A DNA stretch of 63,258 bases, the filler included, from Klebsormidium nitens (Eukaryota; Plantae; Klebsormidiophyceae): NCBI GenBank assembly GCA_000708835.1. It is 4 parts of 4 records of this genome, joined end to end, with 100 filler letters (N's around TTAATTAATTAA, not from the genome) between each part and the next. Parts side by side here need not be neighbours in the genome. Positions count along the whole stretch, not along the records: positions 27,139 to 50,543 come from DF237843.1; 3 more parts are not named here. The stretch is one strand, 5' to 3'. Position 1 is the first letter of the stretch; each line of letters begins with the position of its first letter. Made by a program: the position numbers and the translations under genes. This document shows positions 27,139 to 50,520 of the stretch, piece by piece. Below the pieces are notes generated by a model. The model had not been told where the DNA came from and did not search any database. It saw nothing but the letters and a program-made list of their open reading frames with translations.

Positions 27139-27487
27139 TTGAGGGCGAGCAGGCCCAGCATTGCAAGGTGGCGCACGATACTGACCGGCCATTGCCATTT
27201 AAACGGTCCATTCATACCGTGCACGTACAGATGATCGATGGTATGCGGTCATAATTCACTACTTTCATAAACATGAATCGCATACATGACGCCATGATAC
27301 GTACATGATATACCCTCAATATACATACACGCAAATGAAATATGGAATTTACTATAATTGCTGGCTAGCGGCAGCTAGGCCCGGCGGCCGCGCGCCGGCG
27401 AGCCTGTCCCGGGTCGCGGCCGGATAACCACAAAGTTCAAACCCTTCAGGCTTGCAGTGGGGTTCGGAATATTCGGAGGGTTTATCC

Positions 27488-31300: not shown

Positions 31301-34300
31301 ACTTGCCCCCACATCAAACCGTTGTTTCGTCGCAGCCTCCCCCGTTACGGTCAAGTCCAACTCAAGCGGCTAAAGGCAGCCGTTAGGTTCGTTCGCCCTT
31401 CGCCATTCATTCCCAAAAGACTGACCCATTGAATCTCCATCGCATCAAACTCGTTCTACCGTGAGCTCTGGCCCTCACCCTCAGATCTGATGTAAAGTCA
31501 ACAGGCGCTTTAGACTCCGTTGCCCTTTACTAACCTGTCCCCTAACCCCGGCTCAAACTCCCCCGCAGGCCCCTGCATCAACCTGCTCTTACAACACTGC
31601 CGGAACTGGTGTTCGCCTGGTTTTCCTCGTCTTTTCAACTTCGTCTGCTCTTAAGCTGTCCCCTAACCCTGGGTTTTACCTCCCTCAGGCCCTTGCCTCA
31701 ACCTGCTCTTCAACACTGCCGGAACTGGTGTTCCCCTGGTTTTCCTCGTCTTTTCAACTTCGTTCGCCCTTAACCTGTCCCCTAACCCTGGGTTTTCTCC
31801 CCCGCAGGCCCTTGCCTCAACCTGCTCTTTAACACTGCCGGAACTGGTGTTCCCCTGGTTTCCTCGCCTTTTCAACTTCGTTCGCTCTTAACCCGTCCCC
31901 TAAACCTGGGTTTTACCCCCCGCAGGCCCCTGCATAAACCTGCTTTTCAACACTGCCGGAACTGGCGTCCGCTTGAAGAACTCCGGAGGGACGACCCTCG
32001 ACCAGATGTCGTACGGTGCCGTCACGTCCGGACTCACCGAGGGGTCGAGCGCCGCTCCCGCCGACAGCAACAGCGCGCAGGCAAGTGCTTCGTTTCCTGA
32101 AGTCCGAACTTTTGGGCTTAATTTTGTGCTAATTACGAGGCCGGGTCGATTGCCTGACGTCAGCAGCGTGCAGACAAGTACTTCGGTTGTCTCTTTTCTG
32201 AGGGTTTCTGCTTGTGCTGGGGATGTGAGTTCACGTCGGCAGTTTACCGAGGGGTCGAGCGCCGCACCCGGCGACAGCAACAACGCGCAGGCAAGCGGTT
32301 TTTCTTTTCCTTGGCAACCCTGATTGTCCAAGACATTGCTTTGAATCATCAGATCAAGGGAATTACCAAGGGATCCGTTCAACGAACCGGCCAAAGCGGC
32401 ACTGCGCTTATCGTACGCCCTCTCCTACTGCATCTTCAGATTCTCGAGAGATCGAGATGACTTGCTCTGAAGTATGGCCGCCAGGAGAATTAGAGATTGC
32501 ACGAATATTCAAAACAGTCCGAGTCCAGCTAAGAAGTGTCATACTTCGACTCGTTTGCTGGCCTCAGTGGTCTGCTCGTTTCAATCCTTTCCGGTAGATG
32601 CAATTGGAATGGCCGAACGCTGTATGGTTCTCTATATGAAATGAACTACAACGGCTAGAGTTGGAATGAGCCAAGGAAGACAGCCCCAATTTTACTCACC
32701 GAAAACGGGCCAATCTGAACCAAATATCCTGTTATCCCCGTATCCCCGAACGTTCATTTCAACAAGTTCTGCACGTTTCCGCTGAAGGGCTCCGTCTCCC
32801 GCTGCCCCGACGGCGGGGACACCAACTCCAACGGCAACGACTTCGCCTTCCGCTCAACCGTTACTGCGGGATCCCCCAACTCGTGCACCCAGGCCGCGGC
32901 TACCGTTACCGGCTGCTCCGGAGCAACCCCCGCCCCCACGTCAGCCGCGGCCGGGTTCGACTTTTTCTTCATGGTGAACCAGTGGCCCGGGGGCTGGAAC
33001 CAGGCGTTCTGCGCCGAGCCTAGTTGGCCACGTGGCCCCTTCTGGACGCTCCACGGGATGTGGCCCAACTACAACACGGGCGGCTACCCGTCCAACTGCG
33101 GCAACGAGGCGTTCCAGCAGAGCCAGGTGGGTAGTGTTACTCCGAACGAAAACTCACTGGTATGACAAACCTGATTATCGGCACACTGCGCGATTCGATT
33201 TTTCGTAATCCAGGTTGATTGGGATTGAGTATGAGTTGAGACAGTGGGAACTAGCTTGCTGTCGAGAGGACATGCAAGAAAGACCTCAGCGATACTTCAA
33301 GAGGGCGTTACTCCACGTGGCTCTCTGGCGACACCCACCTCTTATTTCATGTGGCATGTGTCGCTGCAATGGGTGCGCCTGTGGCTTTTCGAACGGACGT
33401 TCTTCGAGTCTTAGGCCGATCGGCCGCCTGGGGGTACGCTCTCTTTCACAAACCCGCACACCTCATCGTTCCGCTCTATCTTCCCCGGTTTGCTTAACCG
33501 GCGGATCTCGAGCATCATCACGGACATGGGGCCAGCACTTGCTCTCTCCTCCTCCTTCGCTAACCCTCGACGGTTTGCTAACCCGCCCGCAGATCTCGAG
33601 CATCGTCACGGATATGGACCGGTACTGGCCGTCCTTCAAGTGCGCTTCCGACAACGTCACCCCCAACGGTGACGCCACCTTCTGGGGCTACGAGTGGGGT
33701 GAGCGACACGTGTCCGTCCGCTAATTTGAACACTCATGTGGAAACCGCTTCTATTTCTGCTCGGTTTCCGTTGTGGCGTGACGCTCGCCGACAACCCGAA
33801 CGATGTGAACAACAACCAGGCAGTGACCAGTAACGGAGACGGGTATGGTTAGTTGGGGGGTTATGTTGGGTGCGGGTGCGAAGCGGGTGATCTTTTGGGT
33901 TGGGGTTTTTAGTAACCCCGAAATGCTTACTGTTCACTGGGCTTACTGTTTACTGGATTGAGTGGGGTGAGCGACACGTGTCCGTCCGCTAGCTCTAACT
34001 TCCGTGTGGATTCCGGTTGGATTTCTGCTTGTTCTCCGTTGTGGCGTGACGCTCGCCGGCGTCGAACCACGCGCGGCGTGAGCGATACGGTCTATTTTGC
34101 TAGTTTACCAGCGATAGAGCGGATGACACCCGTCCGCGTTTCGTCCGGATTTGTCGAAGTCTGTCCGAATCGTGTCCGTTTGCCGTCCGAAACTTTCGTC
34201 CCTCTCGAAGTCTACCATTGGTGGCGACAGCTGTCCACCTCTCACTTGAATCTATCCAAATTGCGTCCGCATGCCTTTGTGCCCGGACTTCTATTGCCGG

Positions 34301-36944
34301 TATGATGGGAGCATTTGTAGAAAATATCAAACTTTTTGGAACGGGTTTCTGCTAACAGCTCTGGGACCACCATTGTTCGCTTCTCTCAGGTTTCTGCCAA
34401 CCTCTCTGAGACCATTCTTCGCTTCTCTCCGTTGTGCAGGCAAGCACGGCACGTGCTCTCAGACCGTGCTGCCCTCTCAGTTGTCCTACTTCTCTGGCAT
34501 CATCAACCTCCGCAAGAACGTCATCGGTGACATGGCGGTACGTACCGGAACCTGACCGATTGGCTCTTTGTCTCTTCTCTTGTTTCGGAGCAGCACTCAC
34601 AGTCGAAGCAATCCGAGACAGACAGTCCGGCCTCGGACTGTGATTTCGAAACGTCTCCGGGGCAAACGGCCAACGATAAAACCAAACGAGATGTGCTTCC
34701 AAGAACCTAATATCCCGAGAAAGCGGCATGGTCCTAAGAGTCTTCAAATGGGTTGACACGCGAGAGCCCTACTATTGAGTTTCTCATAGGATATTTTGCA
34801 AGATCGTTTCGCAGGGAAAAACACGCCAGAATAGGCTAGAGCCGGGTACCTTGGAATTACGGATTTACTGGGCAGATAAAAACCCCTTTCCCCGACCTCA
34901 AAAGAGATCTGAAGCCAGGAAACGTCTGATGTGGCTGCATCTGTTCCTCTTCTTCGGTCTTTTTGTTCTTTTCTCTTGGTACGTCTTCGGACTCCAAACA
35001 GACTTCCAACGCAGATTCGACCGCCTTGCCTGCACAGCGACCGTCCGAAAACAAAGCTACTGCGACGAGAATCGAAGGCTCGGTTGGCTTTCTCTGAACC
35101 TGCCTCAAGGGCAGATCTCGAAGCTTTTCGCACAGAGTCTCGCTGGTCTTAACCACAATAGATTGCTTCGAACACATTCAACTTTCAAAGAGAGCTTCCA
35201 GTGAATGGTTCATCAAGTGGCACGATTCACGTGCCCGGTTCTAACGCCCCGACTACTTCCGCAGACCATTTTTTCTGCCGCTGGGATCAATCCTGGGGGG
35301 CAGATACGCCCATTCGTGACTTGTGCCCGTGTTTAGATCCCCGACCCCCTTTCTTTGCTTCCCGCAGACCATTCTGTCTGCCGCGGGGATCAACTCCAGG
35401 GGCAATCAACACAAATACCTACATACAGAATGCAGTCTGCGGTTCCGACTCCGACAAAACCCCAGAACCTCAACAATCTAAAAATGCTTGGTTACAACGC
35501 CCCGACCGCCTTTTTCTTGTCCTTTCAGACCATTCTGTCTGCCGCGGGGATCAACCCCGGGGGCACATACACCATCACCTCGATCAGGAACGCCGTCTCC
35601 GCGGCCATCGGGTACTTGCCGTACGTCAACTGCAACCCGGGCACCAACGTCATGACCGAGATCTGGGTCTGCGTGTCGAACACCGCCAGCCTCAACGTGA
35701 GTGTGACCTCTTTCGACTTCGAAAACAGGCTGACACTTTGTTTGTGTTATTCTTCGAAATGTCTGCGTTTCACACGAGTTTTGGCTCTTAACCAAGGACG
35801 GTTCTGGGCTGGTTAGAAACTGGTTATTTGACCAGTAACCAAACCTGGGCGTTGACCAGCCGCTGAACATGATTAAACTCCGGTTAATTGTCCAATAACC
35901 CGAGCGTCATCTCTGGTAGTCAGCCTGGTTAGCAGCCAAAACTTCCTGTGTTTGTTTTGTCAAAGAGGGCTCCCTCAAGCGACCTTTTCAGCCGAGGCTC
36001 CGCTCTGGGGTCGTGCCTTTCAGCACTTGCACCATGCGCCTATATGGTGAGAGTGTTTCACCGATTCTAAGAACTTATATAGAGAAAGGTTTGCCGCTTA
36101 TATGCTTTCACAATTTCGTATCGAAGTAAGGCAAGCAAACCATCGTCCATCTCTTTGTTTTTTTTGCTAATATTTGAAATCTTATTTTTGAAATATTTTG
36201 AAGAAAGCCCACAGAGCACGTGCTCACAACTCACACCGCGCACGGTCTGTGTGTCGCTGGAGAGCCACGTGGGCGAACGCCCTCTATGAAAGGCCATGTA
36301 GCATAGACGTAAGTTCCGACCTTGGATTACCTGAAACTCCGTGTCTGGATCCTGTTCTCCCGTCTGTTCTCCTGACCGATTCGGATCGATTGACGCCCTT
36401 TGATTCAGATGCCTTGTGTCTTCAAACCTTTGACTCAAGATTATTAGTGTCCTTATCCGAAGGGAACCTTCGCCGTGACTGCGTGCCCCTTACTCAGCTT
36501 AAATGGGCGTTGAGATTTGACGACCGTCACCCGTAGCTGCTGACGGCGGCATCTTTTTGACGCCCACGATTTTGGACGTCAGTTTGATGATGGTCTGAGC
36601 ACCGTGCGATCTTGACAGGACGTGCACGTCATACGCCCACTTTAAGATGGCACGTGACGCACATTTCGTCCGTTTCCCCTAGCGCCGCTTCACCGACTCA
36701 TATCGACTTATCTCATAGCTCGATAGGCTAGAGTCTGGATGTTCTGTGTGCTGCGTTGGTAGGGTCCCTTGGAACATTGACTCTGCGTTGCTGGTGGGTG
36801 GACCGCCTGTTGTATTGCCCGTTTGTTGGTATATAGCACTTACCTATTCGTTTCTTCTCCTTTCCGCTCTAGTTGATCGTCTGCCCCGTCATCCCCGCCG
36901 CGTCCTGCTCCAGCACTTCCGTCCAATACAAGACCTTCGCTTAG
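28368..36944 (+). CDS. Secreted lamin-tail-domain (LTD)-RNase T2 fusion protein, 8 exons, ~420 aa
   Basis: Exons 28368-28460, 30545-30776, 31926-32080 (GC donor), 32788-33126, 33593-33698, 34440-34537, 35529-35696, 36873-36944, all phase-consistent. Signal peptide MESSLRILVLLGLCALVAA. LTD motifs IINEVDYDN..AEFVELRNMG..SLTGYKL and SVSRCPDGGDTNSNGNDF..TAGSPN. RNase T2 CAS I FWTLHGMWP and CAS II FWGYEWGKHGTC. Confidence 0.9.
29880..30590 (+). repeat. Five tandem copies of branch point, polypyrimidine tract, AG and exon-2 start
   Basis: Exon-like starts at 29921, 30066, 30225, ~30376 and 30545 (the complete exon). Each is preceded by CCTAAC and a pyrimidine tract and contains GGGCTGCA. Confidence 0.88.
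31530..31970 (+). repeat. Four ~119 bp tandem copies of acceptor and exon-3 start
   Basis: CAG|GCCC(C/T)TGC..AACCTGCT..AACACTGCCGGAACTGG at 31569, 31689, 31808 and 31926 (the complete exon). Confidence 0.92.
33690..34070 (+). repeat. Duplicated exon-5 end, donor and ~100 bp of intron
   Basis: GAGTGGG|GTGAGCGACACGTGTCCGTCCGCTA at ~33692 and ~33960. The downstream CCGTTGTGGCGTGACGCTCGCCG also appears in both copies. Confidence 0.85.
35240..35570 (+). repeat. Three copies of acceptor and exon-7 start
   Basis: CAG|ACCATT(T/C)T(T/G)TCTGCCGC.GGGATCAA at ~35265, ~35368 and 35529 (the complete exon). Confidence 0.85.
35768..35950. mobile_element. Intronic MITE-like repeat, family A, copy 1
   Basis: Imperfect TIRs TTTTGGCTCTTAACCAAGG ... 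CCTGGTTAGCAGCCAAAA. Homologous copies at ~39337-39515 and ~46555-46750 (reverse). Confidence 0.65.
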
Positions 36945-37980: not shown

Positions 37981-40900
37981 TTACGAGTCGGACTGAGACG
38001 AAACGCTGTGACGCTCTCGCCATTCTCTTATCTCGATCATCAGGGACAGATCGGTGACTAGCATGCAATGCTCGAGCCGTAAGTTTGTCAATGGAGACGT
38101 CTTGCGCGTCAACAGCCATCTTGATATGAATTGCCGGTCATAGTGATGGCCGTCTGCGGCCAACACAGGCTCTTCCATGAAGTCCTGCAAAGGAACCAAT
38201 GAATGGGTGCAGATATTCACTGTTTACCAGTCTCGAAGCAGATTTCTGACAGGAAACGTTAACAATCAAATTAACCTCGAGGAAGTATGGCGGGCAGAAT
38301 CGACACGAGAAGGCAACCAGTCAATCAGAGTCTGTTTAACTCAATCGTTAACTATTCTCCTGAAGCGAGCATACCCAAAGCTAGCCCTGTACAGAATGTA
38401 ACGAGCACCGCGCCGAGATTGGCCAGGATCAAACCGCGACACCGGGTGCTTATAGAAGATTTAAAATTGAGCGACGTCCTTCGTCAAAGTGAAACAAGGC
38501 CGGCCTCGGAATCGAATTCACGACTCGAGCCTTTCCAGTGATGCGCAAGAATCGCGTTTCCTCATGTGGCGGGAGCGATTCGATTTTCCGGAAGAGGCGA
38601 GTTTTGAAAAAATTCAACGTGGCAAGGAACCTTTCCGGCCGGTTTCTGTATCCAAGATCCAACTAACACGCTCTCGGTTGCCTTTTACCTTTCTTTCAGA
38701 AAAATCTGGCGATTCGAAACCCCGCCAGAAGTCTCATGTCTCTGAAACCCGCCCGGGCCTATCGACCAACGGTCGAGCCGGCAAGATTCATGGGCACATG
38801 TTTGAATCGAGTCGCGCCCCGGAACCGCGTGCACCACTCATAGAGCTGATGTTAACGGACAAGTCGGACTTGAGAGGGGACAAGCTGAGAGCACGCAAAC
38901 ATTAGACCAAGCAGAATTCTAACGCGCAAACGTTTCAACAGAAAGCATAAAAACAAAACCGTTAGCGGAAAGAAAGAGAAGAAGCGGTGATCAAACCTTC
39001 ACCTGAGAGATCGGACACCTGAATTTGTGGGGCACCTCTGGCCCCCCCTCTCGTTCCGACGCCGCGAGCGCGCGCGCTTTCATGGCGGTCAGCACCGGCA
39101 CGATCTGCCTCTCGAGGCTCGGCCGGTCTTTGCGCGCGGTCTCCGTGCAGGCGATCGCGAGACGCGCGAGCGCGGCCGCGTCCTCCGCGGGCCAGCTCCC
39201 CGCGGCCGCGTCTAGAACCGTGCGCAGCCGGCCCGCGGAAACGGCCTCCGACACCACGCGCCGCAGCCCGACGGGCGGCTTGCCGGTCAGCAGCTGCAAC
39301 GTTCAGGCAGAAAAGGTTTCACTACATCTGATAAGTTCACACGAACTTTTGGCCCTTAACCACGGATGGTTATCAGCTGGTCCAGAAGTGGTTGACTATC
39401 CCATAACTGGACTCGGACGATAACCATCTGTGAAAAAAGGTGAACCATCGGTTACTTGTCCAATAACCCAAGCCTCGAGTCTCGTAACCAGCCTGGTTAA
39501 AAGCCAAAATCTTTTGTGGTCAAACGCAAGGGTAAAAAGTGTGCGGGTGAGATGGGACTTCACTCCAACGCGCAGCCCTTTCAAGAAGCTCAGAATGATT
39601 CGTACGTCTCTACCCGAGCGCTCAGAGTTGGAACGGATGATGAAGCAACTAGTGAAGCGTGAGATCTCAATGCTATGTCGATTATTCCCGGCTTGGCAGA
39701 AAACTCAAACCCGGCCACCCTTGAGCCAACGTCGCTGCGCATGTTGTGTCCGGTTTGCTTGTTTCGCACGTTAACGCGTTCTCGTGCGTCGCGGATCCGA
39801 GCATCTGTTCCCCAGTGCAATGCAAAGGTTGGAACTGCAATCCTGGACGGATTTGAATGCAGTGTCGATCTCGAGCGGCCTACCTGCAAGAGGACGACGC
39901 CAAAAGCGAAGACGTCGGAAGCTGGCCCGTACTCGCCCTCGTTCGCGTATTGGGGGTCCATGTATGCGAACGTGCCAACGGCAGAGCCCCCACGGGAGGA
40001 CACGTGGCTGGCCGCCCGGAGGTTTGCCCCGGGCGCGAGCTGAGGTGCGATCTCCGCCAGGCCGACGTCACACAGCTTGCTGACGAGATTACGGTCTAGG
40101 AGGATGTTCGCGGGTTTGACGTCGCTGTAAAAGCGGAGATGGCACAGATTATAAGGCGACGTTTTTTGCACCAGTTTCACGTCGCCGTTCGCAAACCACA
40201 CATTACTTTCTGTGTGATTGTCATCTTTAAAGAACCTTTCTTGATCCAGTTTACAGCCCCTGGATGAGCGACATCCACTCCGGTGATCGTTTTAGCCAGA
40301 GTTCCCTTCATCCGCCTATCAGAAGGACATTCAAGCAAGGAACCATCAACGTTGGATGACGGCACAACTTTTCTCTGTTATATCTTCAAAAAACGCCCCG
40401 CCAGCCCCCTCACCGGTGAATGATGGGGGCGGGCCGGGCGGAGTGCAGCGCCAGCAGCACGACCGCGACCTCGGCCGCGATGCGCGCGCGCGCCTGCCAC
40501 GTCAGCGCGGCGCTGCCGCCCGCGCGGTTCAGCCGGTCATCCAGACTGCCGTTCGGCATGAGGTCGTATACCAGGCAAGCGCGCGGTTCGAGGCACGTGC
40601 CTAGGAGCATCGTGACGTGGGGGTGACGCACGCGGCAGTGCACTTCGACCTCGCGCTGAAACTCCGCGGGGCCTTGTTGGCCGTGCTCGGACAGGACCTT
40701 CGGGAAAACAGTGAAGTTTGGTTAACAGCAAGTTTCAGACAACCCGCCGCTTTTGGTTAGAAAAGTTAGCCGGAGTTACAGTAGTTGCTGCTATCATGGG
40801 AGACTTGAAGAAGTGACTTGTGTGGCCTTCAGGTTTTCCGTGTCTCGCAAAATCGACAAAGTGCTCGCAAAGCGCTGTGGTGATAACGTCTGAAAGCAAG

Positions 40901-43900
40901 AAGGACTTCGCCGAGAACGGATGGGGTTAGTGTGGGGGCAAGAGTCAATATGTGCGGATAATGTCACGTTTTGATTACGCTTTCTCATGTCGGGTGCATG
41001 AGGAAAGTCCTATGCGCTTCCCTATCATATCCTAATATTACTATCAAAGTTTAGTGGTACGGACCTTCACGGCGACCTCGATATGGTCGACCACGCCCTT
41101 ATACACCGTCCCAAACCCCCCGGTTCCGATTATGTTCGCCTCCGCGAAGCCCGCGGTCGCGGCCGCGAGATCCGCGTACGCGTATCGCTTCAACGGCGCG
41201 TGGTCCAGTAAGCGGCCGGCGCTGCGGCACGCCGCCTTGGCCACCTTTTCCAGCTCCCACACCTTCGACTGCTCCACGTGAAGCGCCGCCTCTAGTTGTT
41301 CCGCTCGCTCCCGTTCCGCCGCGAGCGCAGCGCGGAGTCCGCCGATCTCGCGCCGCTTGGCGCCAAGCGCCTCCTCGGAGCGGAGCCAGGAAGAGAGAAC
41401 CGCTTTTTCCGCTGCAGAGAAGACGAGTCCCGGACCGGAATTCCGGTTGGCGGATCCGTCGGTCCTTGGCGAGATCGGAGCGCGTTGTATGCTTGATGAG
41501 GCGTCCGTTACACCGCCACGTGGCGCTTCGGTACCAACCCCAGATCCGATCGTTATCGACGAAGAAAAACGGGTGCTTCCGGCAGGAGACGAGGGAGCGG
41601 AATGAACAAGGAGGATAGGATCGGCCCCGTAATCACCAGAAGCCGCGGAATGAGGGGGATTCGTTTCGAGGCGGTGAACCTGGATGAGGCACTCGCGCGC
41701 GCGCTGCCCATGAGGGGCGGTGCTCGCGCGGGAAGTGGACTCGATCGGAACAAGGTCGGGGGTGCTCGCTCTGAGAGTCGCGGTGCTTGCGGGCGCCGCA
41801 GTTATCGTAGTCTCTGCCACGTTGTCTTCATCGGACAGTGACTGGCCGGAAGACGAGGCGGCTTGCGAACCGACGGCGCGCAGACCAGGCCCTGGGTCAG
41901 CTGCCTCGCTGCTCGCGCGCGTTGCCGGGCTGCTCGCGCGCGGTACTGGACGGCTTGGGCTTCCAGTAAGGGCGTTTGATGGGCCAGCAATAGTGGATGC
42001 CGCAGAGGGTGGTGCTTCGGATATGTAAGACGTCCTAGCCGCAGGCCGTCTTGGAATTGCGGCCTGAGCGAAAGTACTGAGAGGCGCATAGGTGGTGCGA
42101 GGAGCCGATACGAGGTTGGGAACCGGCAATGCGTCCCGCCTGCACAGGTACGTCCGAGATGCGTTTTTGTGTTCCCATATACGGCTTCAATGACCCAGAT
42201 TATTTTGAAAGAGCGTTTTGAGGAAAATCCTGGATCTGAAACATGCAGGGGGCTTCACTTGCGGATGACGGCCTAAGAATCTGAATAGTATTGTAGTACT
42301 CTCCAGCTGAACCGGGGCTCGGCGGAGGTGCTCAAAAACAAAAGTTCAAGGATCCTGATCTGATGATTGAATTCTCAATTTTCACCACGATGACGATGGA
42401 AGAAGAAAAATTCATTGAAGTCCTTTGATGCGGGCGGTCCGACTTGCAAGTTGACATGCCATACCCTCCCCGTGCTAATTCTTTTCACAGAGTGGAATTT
42501 GTTTCACCTATCCAGGTCTCTACCGGTTGCTTTGGATCCTCCAAAGAAATTAATGTCAACTTCGCTTACCTAGCAATGGCATAGGCGCCAAGTATGCCGT
42601 TGGATGTCAGGTATAGCATAATGGGTAGTGGGGAAGGCCTACGGTGCCCGCTCGGGAATCTCGGGTCCTCCCACAGAATTTGCGAGGAGGTTATGTCGAC
42701 GGCTAGTCCAACCACGAAATCTCGCTCCTCTAAAGCTGGACAAACAACAGAGTCACACTCATACAAACTAATAAGTACATTGGTTGTCCTCCAGGATACA
42801 CAGAGAAGACTGACTGACGTGGCAGCGTTTGTTGGCGACAGCGCAGCAGCGCCCGAGCACGGGAAAGTCTGCGCCTCATGTCGCGCGAAAACTCGAGACA
42901 GACGCACAATTTGATAAGCTCCGCATTGCCGAAACTCGTGTCGCTAGTCACATGACGTGTGTACCGCAAACACAAATTCGAAGAGTTATGAGGACTTTTA
43001 ACGGCTTACTCGGAGAGCCCACCCACTGAAGCCATTCGTCTGGCGCACTCCCCCATTTCAACTGTCGCAGCGACTCGAGTTCATAGCCAGCGTTTTCGGC
43101 GCTGGGAAGATCCCAACCCAGCAGATTGATTTGCTCGGAAGCGCTCTTCCGATTAGCAACGAGTATGAAGTTCCTGCAAGCCGCTTCTATCAGATAGTCA
43201 ACCAACTCAGGTCTGTCAAGAGACATTTCAAGCATAGAATCACCCTCTCTGAAGTTGAGTTTTGAACCGCCTCAGATTGAGTTGTCACTACTTCAAGGCA
43301 CGTACCTAGTGAAGCTGTGCTCTGTTTTCTTACCAAACAATCTTTTCATGGCGTAGGAGACGTTCTCCTCTGCGCTTCGTACAAAGGGCAACCGCTCTTC
43401 GATTATACAAATGAACATTCGAAGACGACTGGACCTCTGCTCAAAGCAAAGCAGAGCTGACTTTCGACTGTTGGAAATATTGAAGCGGTTTCCCAAGTTC
43501 ATCTGGTTGAACCGCACAAATCTTTCTAATCATTCCCAAACGAATCACGTAAAGAACTGCCGTACTTCGAGAAGGCGGCGGCTTGTGCTGTTCCTACTCT
43601 AAAGCGATCGCCCTCGCTGGAAGTAGGCAGATGTGTCACTGTCGGGAGCCTGATATATACTACTAAAAGGCATTTGGCAAACCCAAAAACCAGATAACCC
43701 GCTCGTGATCGACGTGAAATATGGTGCCTTCTCTTCCTCAGATTTTGACAAGAACTCTGCCCCTTTGTGATTGGGTGCCTATAGGGTGCGGAGCTTGCAT
43801 TTCTAGGTTTTGATTTCCATGTTGCTTTCCCCCGAGCACGATCCTGTGGATCGAGAAGGATGTTCGCGAAGATTGCAAACTCACCAAGCGCTGATGACAG

Positions 43901-46900
43901 CTGTGTGCAAGTTCGGTCCCGTGTCTGCTCTTGTTGCTCCGGGAAGGATGTGCGGGCAGAGGCCGGTGAACAGGATCTGGCTCAGACTGCCGGTTCTGTC
44001 CGCAAAATCCGAACCAGTGAATCTCAGGGCGACCAGAGGGCTTGTGCCGGATCCGGACGCTTGGATTGGGTCCGATTGCACCAGGCCAAGGAGGAGAAGA
44101 TCAGGGTGAACCCATTCCAGACTGTCGACTGCAAGAAGTGACGTAGTTCTGATGTAAGACAAGTTGAGATGCTTATCCGTGACGTGGGTCCATCGCTTGC
44201 ACAGTTTTGCGAGTGCCCTTAGCCTTCGTCTTACCAGGAAAAAAGGAGACCTTCCAACACAAGGTGATCTAAGGTTGCTAAGAGCGTCAATACTCAGATT
44301 AAATGACGAACAGTGCAGGAGAGATGCTTGGTCGTAAGGCAGGCATCCCCCGTCAAGGTCCCTTTTCTGGTTCACTTATCAGGACAATTCTTTCAGCACC
44401 AGCTTCTGAAGTACCCCAGATAAAGTGAGGGGAGAATTGCGGTTCAGGACGCGGAAAGATTGATCTGTAAGGAAGGTATTCTTGAGTTTCTTGAGTTGCT
44501 TGTGCGAGAGGAAAGAATTGCATGGGCCCTATGGTGATGCCTTTTACGCGCCCGTGGATAGATACCTGCAACAACCGACTCCGGCCGCCAAACAACATTA
44601 CCGAATCTGTGGTTCTGCGGGTTTCGCGGTTATCTGAGAAGCTCGGCGGCGCTCAAAAATGGATAAGAAGGACGACTGGGCGTTCTCACTCCTCTGTTTG
44701 ATGTCATTGTTCGTCCGGTAGTCTCGAGCTCGCAACCCAACCGGCAGCTCAAGTTTGGTAGTAGCAATGAACGCCTTAAGATCTGACGTCTTGATGTAGA
44801 TTGTACCGTCTGTGGATACGTAGGCCACGTGGCGTCCATCGGGGCTCCAAGAAGCTGTAAGAAGTAAGAGGTTAACTGCGTCAGTCACGGCAAAGGAACG
44901 CGTGCACAGATTGGCCAGAGCAGGTGCGGTGCACTATGGTCCGAAGAGGGAATCCGTGTCACGGACGTATCTCCAACTTGAGGTCGATGTCAAGAGCGCA
45001 CGATCTCAGTCGAAACTGATTGGCTGATTATCTTTGGAATGGTCTCTGTCCAGGCCTTGATTTGAGATTTGAGCCTCAGACTCCGACGAGCATGATAAGC
45101 GAAGCGAGGTACTCACTACCTGCTGACTATTATCGGTGCGATGATGGCCTCACGTATCTAGAAAATTGGAAAGACCGCCTTTGGAAAGCGTTGCGCGAAG
45201 AAAGCTCAAAACAAGTCCAGCCCAAGAGTATGCTTTGAGAAACCGGAAGTGGAATGAATGTACCACTTGAAAATGCACGGTAACGCACACGAGATGTTCA
45301 AGGTCTGCTCTGTAAGTCAAGACTTACTCTAATCACAGCTGAAACAAGCACGCCTGAGAGACAGAGGCGAACGCACCAAGTTTCTACAGCCCGTTTGCGA
45401 ATGCTGGCATTAAACCTCTCCAAAGGTGAAATTGACTCTTGCCATTCACGTGTTTTGAAGCCCATCAGTCTGCCACACTAAGTCTTGATTCCTTGTGGAG
45501 TCAGGCCTATGTTGAGTTGGACCAGTTGCCCGGGCTCCTACAAACGAAAACCTTAAACCCAAAGTTTACATGCTACGCACCCGTACCCACCCTTAAAACC
45601 CCAGACCAATCCCACCCGTTCCGTAGGCATGACCTAGGTCCGTACTCAAGATAGCTCACCGTAATTCCATATAAAGTCAAGACTACTTCCGCCAGAGACT
45701 CTGAAGGAAATCAAGACTCGTTTCATCGATGTCTTACCTGCCACCGCTATGAGGACTTCCGGCGAAGGAATAGCGCCCTCGGTCACGTCGGGAATCAGCA
45801 GCAGAATGTTGTTTTCTAAGAGAGCGAGCAGAGTGCAGGGGCCGGTTGGTGACCACGCCAGAGACCGCACGCAACGTCGTGCGAAGGTCCTCAAAGCGGT
45901 GGGGTTCGGCTGAAGTGGAGTAAACGAGAATCAGTACGATCCAGTGTTTCGTCAAAAGCTCCCAACAATCGAGGAGACAGACAACTCTTTATTCTCAGAA
46001 GGCGAGCGCCGGGAGTTGTCACAGTGCCCAGAACGGATGGAGGCGGGGAAGTGTGAAAAAGAGCACTGATCAAAAGATGGGGACACGTGTCCACCGCTAA
46101 ACTCAAGTAGGGTGGGACGGTCCAAAAGCGGGGAAGTCAGGACTCTTGTTCCGTGCGTAGCAGGTCCGGACTCCCTACTTGCCTGCCGGATCATGTCCGT
46201 CTCAGGAATCAAAGACACCATCGAACCAACTCGCGCTGCGCAAGCTTCGAAACGCAGAACGAAGTAGCGGTATCGTTTGAATTAAGTCCGTTCCTTCAAG
46301 TTGAAGCCTTCACCTGTTCCAGAAGCTCCTGCGTTGAGTAGATCGTCAAGTTCCTTTTCGTGCAGACCGCGAGACGCAGCTCGTCGGCTGAGAGGCTGAG
46401 GATGTGAACACTCTCTTCGAACGACACCCGCTTGAATTGTTCTCCTACTCCGTTGGAAGCAGAGGACTCGCGATCGCCCAGTTGGGCGAGCTCAATCAGC
46501 CGAGCCGTGGGGGCAGCATAGACGCCTACAGATGAGTTAGGGAATTTCAGAAGTAAAGGAAGTTTTGGCTGCTAACCAGGCTGATTTACAGAATTTATTT
46601 TCACGTTATTGGACGAATAGCCGGGCTTTGACCTCGGTTCAAGGCGGGCGACCCGCCCAAGTCTAGTTATTGGACATAAAACCACTTAAAACCGTGCCCG
46701 TAAGCAGCCCATAACCGTCCGTGGTCAAGGGCCCAAACCTCATGTGAACGTCAGCGCTTAGATTTAATGGATAAACGAGTTGGGCTCCGCTTTTACAACC
46801 TGGCCAATCCGTCTCTTGCAATCCTTGAGCATCCCAAAGAGAAACTTCTGAAAGAGGCGGTTCACGGGAATGCCGGGTTCCTGAATCTGGCCCAGTGAGT

Positions 46901-47228
46901 CACAATTGCACTGAGGAATTCTCTGATCCTCCATGTGAGTCGAGAAACGAGGAGGACAAGTACACGTGATGGTGTGTTAGGATCCCTCACCGTTTGCATG
47001 CGCAAAGAAAGTCACCCCATAAATGTTGGACACAACCAACAGACGTGCTTTCCCTGGGAGGCTCGACTCCGCAGACCCTTGCTCATTGTCCGTCCAAAGT
47101 CTCAAGGGCCGCCCTAGTTGCTTGAATGAAGCAGAGGAGGTCAACCTCGGACCCTGTTCCGATGTATTCCGGACTCTGGTGGCGATATCAGGGACGGGCC
47201 CCCTTCGAGCTGAACCTGCCGCCGACAT
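37981..47228 (-). CDS. Chimeric protein: Nup214-like N-terminal beta-propeller, Ser/Ala/Pro linker, coiled coil, RLCK-IX-type Ser/Thr kinase, U-box; 12 exons, ~1151 aa
   Basis: Exons 47228-46991, 46525-46314, 45909-45738, 44854-44690, 44128-43885, 43173-43010, 42735-42570, 42139-41065, 40697-40414, 40124-39884, 39293-39003, 38184-37981, all GT-AG and phase-consistent. Propeller motifs LLVVSNIYGVTFFAH, VHILSLSADE, IDSLEWV, LVANRKS, VVGLAVD, MLYLTSNGIL. Kinase motifs IGTGGFGTVYKG, VAVK, HRDVKPANILLD, DVGLA, GTFAYMDP. U-box motifs FRCPISQDFMEEPVLAADG..SPLTN. Kinase and U-box are near certain; the fusion itself is inferred. Confidence 0.8.
39337..39515. mobile_element. Intronic MITE-like repeat, family A, copy 2
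   Basis: TTTTGGCCCTTAACCACGGATGGTT ... TTGTCCAATAACCC ... CAGCCTGGTTAAAAGCCAAAA. Confidence 0.6.
45481..45718. mobile_element. Intronic MITE-like element, family B core
   Basis: TIRs AGTCTTGATTCCTT / AAGGAAATCAAGACT. The core CGCACCCGTACCCACCC is the reverse complement of the 27488 element core. Confidence 0.55.
46555..46750. mobile_element. Intronic MITE-like repeat, family A, copy 3 (reverse orientation)
   Basis: GGAAGTTTTGGCTGCTAACCAGGCTG ... CCATAACCGTCCGTGGTCAAGGGCCCAAACC. Confidence 0.6.
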
Positions 47229-48571
47229 TTCCGTTGCCGTCGATCCCTTGTGTATGGATAAAACACGCCGTCTACTGCTGCACGGACCAAGCATGCACTC
47301 TCTGATCGATCGCCAGAGCGGACTAGGTTTCCATATTACTGGCAAAGCACCGTTAGCAGACGACTCAAACTGGCCTCAGTGGCAAGTGCTTACAATGTTT
47401 GTGCACTAGCTTAGTCGCGTCAGCACGTGCCGGGCATGGAACGCCACAAGATGCGCGAGCTTTTTCTTTTTCAGAACCGATGTCCAAATCCAAACCAGGG
47501 TGAGAATTGACCATAATTGGCCGCAAATGATCGATTCAGATACGGTAGTGCTTTTGCAACTTGCAGGCACCCGCCACTGCCTGCAAGCCACCAACCATGA
47601 TGCAAGAACTGGTCAAACTTGCCGATTCCCTGGACATGAAAAGGACATGAATATAGCTGTGCAAGCAATAGAGGCCGCCTCGCAGGATTGGTCACTTGTA
47701 CCGATGATGTCAGGAATCTACTCGAGAATTTGTCCAGATTAGTCACTGTACGAAAGCTTCGGAACGTCGGAAGGCAGTCAACAATCTGCTTCCTCATACA
47801 ACCAGGACTACAGTCTTCCACCAGGACTACCTACGTCGATCTTCGATCCGACAGCGAAGCCAGGCAAATCAAGGCGGTGAGTTGTACTAAGGCATCCGAA
47901 GAACCAATCATGCACAATGATCCGCGCGCGACCTTGGTGCTCGGGCCATCATATTTGCATGGCGACTTTTGGACTTCCGCCGTCCGGCCCTGCGGTAACG
48001 TACACGTGTCCCGTCCGAGTACTTCAACTGACTACTCGACCGCGCACGCCGACCGGCACCTATTACCACCTCAGTGACATTTGTACCGGCCGTGCACGCG
48101 CAGATACTCGGTACGTTGAGGTGGTAGGACNNNNNNNNNNNNNNNNNNNNNNNNNNNNNNNNNNNNNNNNNNNNNNNNNNNNNNNNNNNNNNNNNNNNNN
48201 NNNNNNNNNNNNNNNNNNNNNNNNNNNNNNNNNNNNNNNNNNNNNNNNNNNNNNNNNNNNNNNNNNNNNNNNNNNNNNNNNNNNNNNNNNNNNNNNNNNN
48301 NNNNNNNNNNNNNNNNNNNNNNNNNNNNNNNNNNNNNNNNNNNNNNNNNNNNNNNNNNNNNNTATGAATATTTGCGAACGACTTGGGGGTAATAGGCAGA
48401 GTCCGCCTTTGAATTATTCAGTGACGGGGGGTGATGGTACAAGGTCACCGCGCCCCCCGGAAAGTTCACAAAGGACTAGCCTACCCTCCAAGGACCCGAG
48501 CGGTCTTACAGCTAGCGTTATCTACCGGTCTCTAATCTGGGTCTTCGAGAATGGTACTTGAGCCTTGGTCT

Positions 48572-49540
48572 TCAGGCCGGGGGATGACGCTGGGGGAAAG
48601 GGTGATCGGGGGACCGCCAAGTCGACAGCAGAATAGAAGAGGCCATAAGCGCGGCGACCCGCGCCCGCGCAGGGTCGTCGAACTCGAGGTAGAGGAGATA
48701 AGCGGAGGATTTCCAATCCCCCTGTTCTTTGATCTGCGCCGGGGAGGCGCCACACTGGAAGGCAAAGGAAGCGCCGCCTCGGCGGAAGGAGTGCCCGGCA
48801 TACCGGGCAGAATCGAAACCAATATGAGACAATTCAGATTTAAATTGGGCCACGAAAGATTTGTGGGTTAAAGTAGTCAGGCGACCAGATTGGTCGGGAA
48901 AAGAAAAGGCAAAGTCCTCAGGGCCACTTGCCACGGCCGAAAATAAGCGGCTTAGAGCATTAACCGGGCACAGAATAGAACCGGGAATAGCCGGCAGAGG
49001 AACTCGGAGGGTCCTTTGACCAAATTGGATGGTTTTTGTCCGGCGAAGGTTTATCCAAACCAGGGACATATCCGGGGCAAATTCAAAATCACCCCTCCTC
49101 ACTGGGGACTGATCTGTGACCGGGTTGGAGCCCTCCTGGGCCGGGCACACGTTAGCCTTCCGAAAAAAACCAAAAAATGCCACCAACATAGCGGCGACGA
49201 AGGCCATAGCCGACGGGGAATACAAATCAAGTCGACGAATGATGCGAGACAAAATGTCCGGAGTGACCGCTAATTTGCGGTTTGGTTGGGCATCTCCCTT
49301 AACCCGTTTTATACCCCGCAAGGTGCGTTCCAGATTGAACATGGCGGGCAGCGGGTTCATTAACCCAGCTTCAAGGTGTAAAACGCGAATCCCATTGAGA
49401 TAGGTTTTAATCGTGCGATAAGAGCAGGTCTCTGCAAGCTTCGTAACATATAAGCAAACAGTCACTTCGTCCGGCTGCATAGGCCGCAGATCATAAGTAG
49501 AGCAGAAGGTGATATAATACGGGCCTGACATGGGCGCCAT
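48572..49540 (-). CDS. Tyrosine recombinase of a DIRS/Ngaro element
   Basis: SAM-like N-terminus (YITFC..YRTIKTYLNGIRVLH). Catalytic residues FFGFFRKAN (R), RRTKT (K), GHSFRRGG (HxxR), GDW, SSAYLLY (Y). Confidence 0.92.
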   Translation of the reverse strand: MAPMSGPYYITFCSTYDLRPMQPDEVTVCLYVTKLAETCSYRTIKTYLNGIRVLHLEAGLMNPLPAMFNLERTLRGIKRVKGDAQPNRKLAVTPDILSRIIRRLDLYSPSAMAFVAAMLVAFFGFFRKANVCPAQEGSNPVTDQSPVRRGDFEFAPDMSLVWINLRRTKTIQFGQRTLRVPLPAIPGSILCPVNALSRLFSAVASGPEDFAFSFPDQSGRLTTLTHKSFVAQFKSELSHIGFDSARYAGHSFRRGGASFAFQCGASPAQIKEQGDWKSSAYLLYLEFDDPARARVAALMASSILLSTWRSPDHPFPQRHPPA

Positions 49541-50520
49541 AGTTGCGCTGAGACGATGTGGCCAGCCACTGGGTTATGTACGCGGCCATCTTGTCCATAA
49601 GCACCGGGAGGGGCGGATCTGTAAAATGAAGCTCGGGATTTTAGTGCCAAATGACGCCCATTTTTCCAATCTGCGAGGAGAGCCGAAAAACGAGAAGAGT
49701 CACCCCGTGAGAGCGCGTCAGCTGAAGAATTGTCTTTGGAGGCGATATATTTGCTGGTCAACCGGAAATTGTAACGAGCAGAAAGCCAGAAGATGTGGCG
49801 GACATATTCCATCATGCGTGGGCCAGTTTCGCCCTTTGCCGTACCCTTATTGATTACTGCGACGACTATCGTATTGTCAATATGCAAACGAACATGTTGT
49901 CCGCTCAAGGCAGCCGAAAATAATCGGCACAAAATAAGTACTGCAAATAATTCATGGACGTGGATAGGTTCTGTGCGATCAGGGGCATCAAGAAATTGTG
50001 ATGCAGCTTGAGCAAATGACAGCGAGAAATAACCGCCCAAGAGAAACGCCCCATAGCCATAGCTCGAAGAGGCGTCAGTGGAAAAATCATCCAATGAGAG
50101 AGGTGTACTAGGAATCAGCTCAGTTTGGCCGTTAAATTGTGGCAAAAATTGGTGCCACCATTCGAGATCGAGGCGCATTGCCGCCGAGATGCGGATATGA
50201 TGCTGCGGCCGTTTCACGCTCCATTGAGCATCGATTAAGCGGCGCAAAAATGTGCGGCCGCCATATACGACCTTGCAAACCCATTTTAGTTTGCCGTTTA
50301 ATTTATCCAACTCCTTACGAGTTATACTAGTACGGCCGAGAGTGGTTGTAATCAGTGCGGAAATTACCGCAAGCTTCTCAGGACTCAAACGAGCCTGCAT
50401 GGCGACCGAATCCAATGTGACGCCAAGAAAATCAATTACCTGGCAAGGGGCGATGCATTTGTGCGCCCGCATATTAACCTTAAAACCCAGTTGTGACGAT
50501 TCGAGTCTATGAATCTTCAT
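49462..50520 (-). CDS. Reverse transcriptase C-terminus and DIRS-type RNase H (5' part lost in the gap)
   Basis: LGFKVN..K..PCQVIDFLGVTLD; DLEWW; STDASS.YGYGA; IHVHELFAV; HIDNTIVV..INKG; KYIASKDNSSADALSR. Confidence 0.9.
   Translation of the reverse strand: MKIHRLESSQLGFKVNMRAHKCIAPCQVIDFLGVTLDSVAMQARLSPEKLAVISALITTTLGRTSITRKELDKLNGKLKWVCKVVYGGRTFLRRLIDAQWSVKRPQHHIRISAAMRLDLEWWHQFLPQFNGQTELIPSTPLSLDDFSTDASSSYGYGAFLLGGYFSLSFAQAASQFLDAPDRTEPIHVHELFAVLILCRLFSAALSGQHVRLHIDNTIVVAVINKGTAKGETGPRMMEYVRHIFWLSARYNFRLTSKYIASKDNSSADALSRGDSSRFSALLADWKNGRHLALKSRASFYRSAPPGAYGQDGRVHNPVAGHIVSAQLWRPCQARIISPSALLMICGLCSRTK

Follow-up and report, generated by a model that had tools for sequence, protein, structure and literature searches.

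The window analysed was a stretch of 63,258 nucleotides (nt), filler included, from Klebsormidium nitens (assembly GCA_000708835.1), comprising four parts joined end to end with 100 filler letters between each part and the next. The gene under study sits in the part at 27,139-50,543, which comes from DF237843.1; all positions count along the whole stretch. It lies on the minus strand from 47228 to 37981, and its 12 predicted exons (3456 nt) encode a model protein of 1151 amino acids (aa) with a single terminal stop. In this model a NUP214-type beta-propeller precedes an RLK/Pelle-type kinase and a U-box, and the two halves may form one fused protein.

The gene model was built from stop-to-stop frames and a scan of phase-compatible GT/AG pairs. 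Splice sites were picked to preserve the frame, so continuity of the frame is no independent test of the model. GT-AG borders were present at all 11 introns (22 canonical splice sites), and no frameshift or internal stop was found. Outside support was obtained for two junctions: that between exons 5 and 6 is bridged by a homology block, and that between exons 3 and 4 is matched by a spliced paralogous transcript, both described below. Guanine-plus-cytosine (GC) content was higher in exons (0.52-0.74) than in introns (0.45-0.52) throughout, and GC at third codon positions (GC3) was 0.58-0.88 in the exons, as real coding exons would be expected to show. A first-pass annotation, made from the sequence alone, had given the start and end of the gene, a 430-nt intron with an in-phase junction and a 1075-nt exon, and had placed seven propeller exons (47228 to 42570) ahead of the kinase exon; all of these were reproduced by the assembled model.

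The propeller half is encoded by exons 1 to 7, on the minus strand like every other feature of the gene. Exon 1 (46991-47228, aa 1-80) starts with the ATG at 47228, a second in-frame ATG lying 22 codons upstream, and encodes the first propeller strands with the motif LLVVSNIYGVTFFAHANG. Exon 2 (46314-46525, aa 80-150) encodes a blade with VHILSLSADELRLAVC. The blade of exon 3 (45738-45909, aa 151-208) reads LAWSPTGP...VTE and resembles by eye the WNPTVP...VTE block of vertebrates. Exon 4 (44690-44854, aa 208-263) encodes a blade with SWSPDGRHVAY and gave generic PD40/WD40 matches. Exon 5 (43885-44128, aa 263-344) carries blades with IDSLEWV..., LVALRF and GPNL..., and exon 6 (43010-43173, aa 344-399) carries a blade with ILVANRKS...LLGW, followed by a divergent loop at the position of the helicase-binding loop. 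The last blade, with VVGLAVD and IMLYLTSNGILGAYAIA, is encoded by exon 7 (42570-42735, aa 399-454), which ends in the donor AG/GTAAGC.

To compare this half with known nucleoporins, a published Nup214 alignment was located through the motifs ILSLSAD and ANRKS (supplementary file 47 of Neumann et al. 2010, PMC2951903; first five parts, rows for Arabidopsis, rice and human/vertebrates). Alignment blocks were scored ungapped against the entire 1151-aa model and against 2000 shuffles of the model. Block A matched best at aa 63, where the human version was identical at 8/14 residues and its score was reached by none of the 2000 shuffles; for the rice and Arabidopsis versions 2/2000 and 5/2000 shuffles did so. 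Block B, in exon 2, matched best at aa 119 (11/16 residues identical to Arabidopsis NUP214, 0/2000 shuffles), and block E matched best at aa 261 at the start of the exon 5 blades (0/2000). Block G (32 aa) matched best from aa 333, with scores of 61 for Arabidopsis and 76 for rice against shuffle maxima of 35 and 33, and crosses the splice junction between exons 5 and 6. The rice version of block I matched in the region of aa 436 (435/436; 9/18 identical, 0/2000 shuffles); the Arabidopsis version was not significant. No shuffle reached the observed score in 6 of the 9 block comparisons, and each of the five blocks had at least one such version.

The five best matches are colinear (aa 63, 119, 261, 333 and 435/436). 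Blocks were picked after similarity had been seen, which somewhat inflates their significance, but five colinear matches at this level are, on this sequence comparison, not chance. The comparison supports the assignment of aa 1-454 to a NUP214-type N-terminal propeller, nearest to the plant rows of the alignment, and the propeller motifs that the first-pass annotation had given as those of Nup214 were thus recovered from a published source in order and above shuffled expectation. As in NUP214 of Arabidopsis (NUP214/LNO1), rice and human and in yeast Nup159, the domain occupies about 450 N-terminal residues and has the motif order LLxVSNxYG...F.AH..G, ILSLSAD, WSP.G, DS..WV, GP.L...ANRKS..E.I.LL.W, VxGLxxD, LYLT..G.L. 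Exon 7 stops at the point where the propeller stops in the Arabidopsis, rice and human proteins. Pfam and PDB (phmmer) searches were run exon by exon. With single propeller exons as queries they returned no NUP214-specific match, giving PD40/WD40-type blade matches or nothing; atlas features for exon 2 pointed to generic coat/nuclear pore complex-type beta-propellers, and those for exon 5 gave no usable match.

Differences from NUP214 were also seen. The model region aligned with the helicase-binding loop of the yeast and human proteins is divergent by eye, and the gene model has no C-terminal phenylalanine-glycine (FG) repeats. The absence of FG repeats after the propeller had been claimed beforehand; the 1151-aa model contains two FG dipeptides, both within the kinase, and no FG-rich frame was found downstream in any minus-strand frame to the edge of the piece at 27139.

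Evidence for a second NUP214-type gene came from four transcriptome-sized contig sets bearing the same species label. Placement of contigs on 40400-46399 gave islands of 32-40 nt only. In three sets, contigs of 6.5-6.8 kilobases (kb; depth 35-98) matched 44824-44855 at 31/32 positions, an interval comprising the first 31 nt of exon 4 and one further base; in the fourth set the same match lay inside a 218-nt fragment. The flanks of the match differ from the window intron and translate as a diverged end of exon 3 and a continuation of exon 4, and the contig is therefore a spliced paralogue mRNA with the same exon boundary. Since the match lies near position 780 of the contig record, about 6 kb of transcript follow it, the size expected of canonical NUP214, and the transcript is probably the canonical NUP214 paralogue. 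The separate full-length NUP214 for which the first-pass annotation had proposed a genome search is thus represented, as far as the data allow, by this diverged transcript, and its presence would leave the window copy free for another role. Beyond the 32-nt island, only about 60% of nucleotides are identical between the paralogue and the window copy, over about 60 nt, which suggests that the duplication is old. Retention of an intact 454-codon propeller frame after such divergence argues for selection.

The near-identity of 44824-44855 beside flanks of about 60% identity may be due to gene conversion or to a strong local constraint acting on the blade motif SWSPDGRHVA. Two further islands, at 44320-44351 (intron 4) and 45554-45593 (intron 3), each of 32-40 nt, have near-identical counterparts in unrelated contigs under the same species label, of which one is 17.9 kb long at depth 149, and are probably small dispersed repeats.

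The second half of the model starts in exon 8 (41065-42139, 1075 nt). Its 5' part (41404-42139, aa 454-699) encodes a putatively flexible linker of about 245 aa with a high content of Ser, Pro and Ala; it has no Met, no FG repeats and no Pfam domain. The middle part (41221-41403, approximately aa 700-760) encodes some 60 charged, helical-looking residues with many Ala, Glu, Arg and Leu among them, which were read as a coiled coil from their sequence and lie at the place of the long helix of RLCK-IXb proteins. The kinase domain starts in the 3' end of the exon (41065-41220) with the Gly loop GTGGFGTVYKG and the VAVK lysine. Exon 9 (40414-40697, aa 813-907) covers the N-lobe and hinge to IIHR (PK_Tyr_Ser-Thr, 2.7e-07), and exon 10 (39884-40124, aa 907-987) covers the catalytic loop HRDVKPANILLD, a DVG variant of DFG and the activation segment (Pkinase, 4.2e-12). 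Exon 11 (39003-39293, aa 988-1084) encodes the C-lobe and the first U-box residues, FRCPISQ. The U-box itself (1.5e-12) is encoded by exon 12 (37981-38184, aa 1085-1151), which ends in the stop at 37983-37981.

In PDB sequence searches, exon 10 matched best to CERK1 (6e-11), other LysM receptor kinases, PBL2, SymRK, IRAK4, FERONIA, Pto and BIK1, and exon 12 to the plant protein PUB12 (6.9e-06). The kinase looks catalytically competent because the Gly loop, the VAVK lysine, HRD within HRDVKPANILLD, DVG and the C-lobe motifs are all present. Pfam, PDB matches and catalytic motifs therefore agree with the earlier description of an intact plant kinase and U-box, and they support reading aa 455-1151 as an RLK/Pelle kinase and U-box with the layout of RLCK-IXb / PUB class VI. 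The order of parts in SlRLCK-IXb-1 is given as USP (1-208), flexible region (209-360), long helix (361-520), kinase and U-box (PMC12803775). In the model the putative flexible region, the helical-looking stretch, the RLK/Pelle kinase and the C-terminal U-box follow in the same order as in SlRLCK-IXb-1 and AtPUB33, but a NUP214 propeller stands in place of the N-terminal USP domain. The window kinase is also of the RD type (HRD), whereas SlRLCK-IXb-1 is described as non-RD (PMC12803775). The first-pass annotation had noted that the usual USP-like domain was missing, and a search of exon 8, the propeller exons and 10 further frames from the introns and 5' flank gave no USP match.

Whether the halves belong together turns on intron 7 (42140-42569, 430 nt, GC 0.45), the proposed fusion junction, which is similar to the other introns in length and GC. 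The donor GCT AG/GTAAGC at 42570 and the acceptor TGTGCAG/G at 42139 join in phase 2; the donor is a perfect AG/GTAAG consensus, and the acceptor shares its TGCAG/G form with four others in the gene. Around exon 8 the frame stays open for 380 codons (42186-41047) without a Met, in agreement with the earlier claim that the kinase needs an upstream exon, and the next in-frame Met is aa 842, beyond both the Gly loop and the catalytic lysine. Within intron 7 there is only one phase-compatible ATG mini-exon, of 14 nt and with a poor donor. A hidden USP or other first exon was considered and rejected, since intron 7 offered no usable one and no domain-coding frame was found in the introns or 5' flank. 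A kinase gene nested in an intron of NUP214 was also rejected, there being no FG or other NUP214 exons downstream to 27139. With no Met in the exon 8 frame and no usable start exon in intron 7, an intact kinase therefore needs the propeller exons, the last of which has the only good in-phase donor nearby and is the nearest candidate, as had been proposed. For these two reasons a fused propeller-kinase-U-box protein is favoured. It is the most economical reading of the locus and, as an in-silico model, is held here with moderate confidence; we infer that the fused mRNA is made.

Several results weigh against this reading. If the exon 7 donor is left unused, the frame runs through AGG into a TAA stop at 42568-42566, and a propeller-only protein is also possible. 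GC3 is about 0.58-0.69 in the propeller exons versus 0.79-0.88 in kinase exons 9-11, a difference that fits a chimeric origin and equally fits two genes. No contig lay on any exon within 40400-46399 in the four contig sets, and no listed RNA run contained the stretch; the first-pass annotation had named RNA support for the joining of 42570 to 42139 as a check, and these sources provided none. The divergence estimate for the paralogue is drawn from only about 60 nt. An exhaustive search of 1.84 billion representative proteins returned no relatives of exon 5, and none were returned for exons 2, 4 and 8 by a word-indexed search of length-matched proteins, a range outside which full-length NUP214 and fusions fall. 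The architecture is without comparative support, these searches being blind to long or distant relatives.

Some matches from these searches were set aside. Those of exon 5 to a crinoid LRR/NACHT protein and a scallop VWA collagen were rejected as spurious leucine-rich similarity. Metagenome matches of exon 4 covered only the generic WSPDG blade motif (query residues approximately 1-39), and none was NUP214-like.

The stop at 42568-42566 and the GC3 difference are both accommodated by two adjacent genes, namely a propeller-only gene ending at the TAA reached by reading through the exon 7 donor, and a kinase-U-box gene with an unrecognised first exon or start, or a non-AUG start. No transcript data join the two halves, which also suits this explanation. 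It must, however, contend with a Met-free exon 8 frame, with a sole candidate ATG exon as short and poorly bounded as that in intron 7, with the lack of any other domain-coding frame in the introns or 5' flank, and with a consensus donor facing an acceptor like others of the gene. We regard two genes as rather unlikely.

The lack of a contig for the locus, in four sets where the paralogue is well covered, and the lack of database relatives of the queried exons could instead mean a silent relic, in which a truncated NUP214 duplicate and a kinase-U-box gene without its 5' end stand in phase by chance, unexpressed and decaying. Decay is not what the sequence looks like: the 3456-nt frame has no stop or frameshift and retains its 22 canonical splice sites, catalytic and U-box motifs are kept, exon GC3 is above that of the introns, and the propeller has retained positions typical of the family although its nucleotide sequence has diverged strongly from the paralogue. 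A relic is accordingly considered unlikely, slightly more so than two genes.

An assembly artefact joining unrelated loci was also weighed, the piece being a short scaffold that contains an N gap. The run of N lies at approximately 48130-48360, outside the gene; 37981-47228 is continuous, and intron 7 is like the other introns in length and GC. An artefact is very improbable.

Upstream of the gene, beyond the N gap, two long overlapping open reading frames (322 and 352 aa) occupy 48572-50520 on the minus strand and look like a retroelement. One has a weak reverse transcriptase RNase H-like match (PF17917, 0.0026); the other resembles a tyrosine recombinase by eye only, which would make the element DIRS-like. 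Downstream of the U-box exon, on the plus strand, exons of the ribonuclease T2 family lie at approximately 33215-35816 (PF00445, 3.4e-08 on 35355-35816 and weak on 33215-33724). A tandem repeat with a unit of 119 base pairs (3.6 copies, 89% matches) lies at 31531-31965, inside the interval of 29-32 kb where GC skew is strongly negative; its repeated minus-strand frames gave no Pfam match.

If the fused reading is correct, the gene would have arisen when a partial NUP214 copy, comprising the promoter side and seven propeller exons cut exactly at the propeller end, came to lie upstream of a kinase-U-box gene. The latter would be an RLCK-IXb / PUB class VI-type gene from which the exons encoding the usual N-terminal USP domain were lost. 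Splicing from the strong exon 7 donor would then lead in phase to the large linker and kinase exon, giving a predicted product of 1151 aa comprising propeller, flexible linker, helical stretch, active-looking RD kinase and U-box. A full-text literature search found no paper in which the four terms Nup214, U-box, kinase and beta-propeller occur together. What is new is the combination; each domain is already well known.

NUP214 propellers bind the mRNA-export helicase of the DDX19/Dbp5/LOS4 type. In the fused protein the propeller may serve as a recruitment module, most plausibly for this helicase, so that the helicase or its partners would be brought to a kinase and E3 ligase. This would happen off the pore, since the model lacks the nucleoporin's FG repeats. 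Against a helicase role, the model shows no visible conservation of the loop used for helicase binding in yeast and human. In its full form the proposal is that the fused protein captures the LOS4/DDX19 orthologue, or mimics of it, and phosphorylates and/or ubiquitinates the helicase off the pore, providing either a new regulatory connection of mRNA export to ubiquitin signalling or a decoy for pathogens whose target is NUP214. We consider this doubtful, and helicase binding and a decoy role are both pure conjecture. The arrangement is like integrated-decoy fusions in plant immune receptors, by analogy only, in that a domain resembling a host target is joined to a signalling module. It differs from those receptors in having no NLR module, and effector targeting of NUP214 is here purely supposed.

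Should the gene not be expressed, the locus would be an ordinary chimeric relic. A fused protein, if made, would show cleanly how a gene can be born by partial duplication and exon shuffling, and would be a natural example of a kinase/E3 enzyme that has taken over the helicase-docking domain of a nucleoporin as its targeting module. It would then offer a directly testable handle on whether phosphorylation and ubiquitination control mRNA-export factors in cells of the green lineage.

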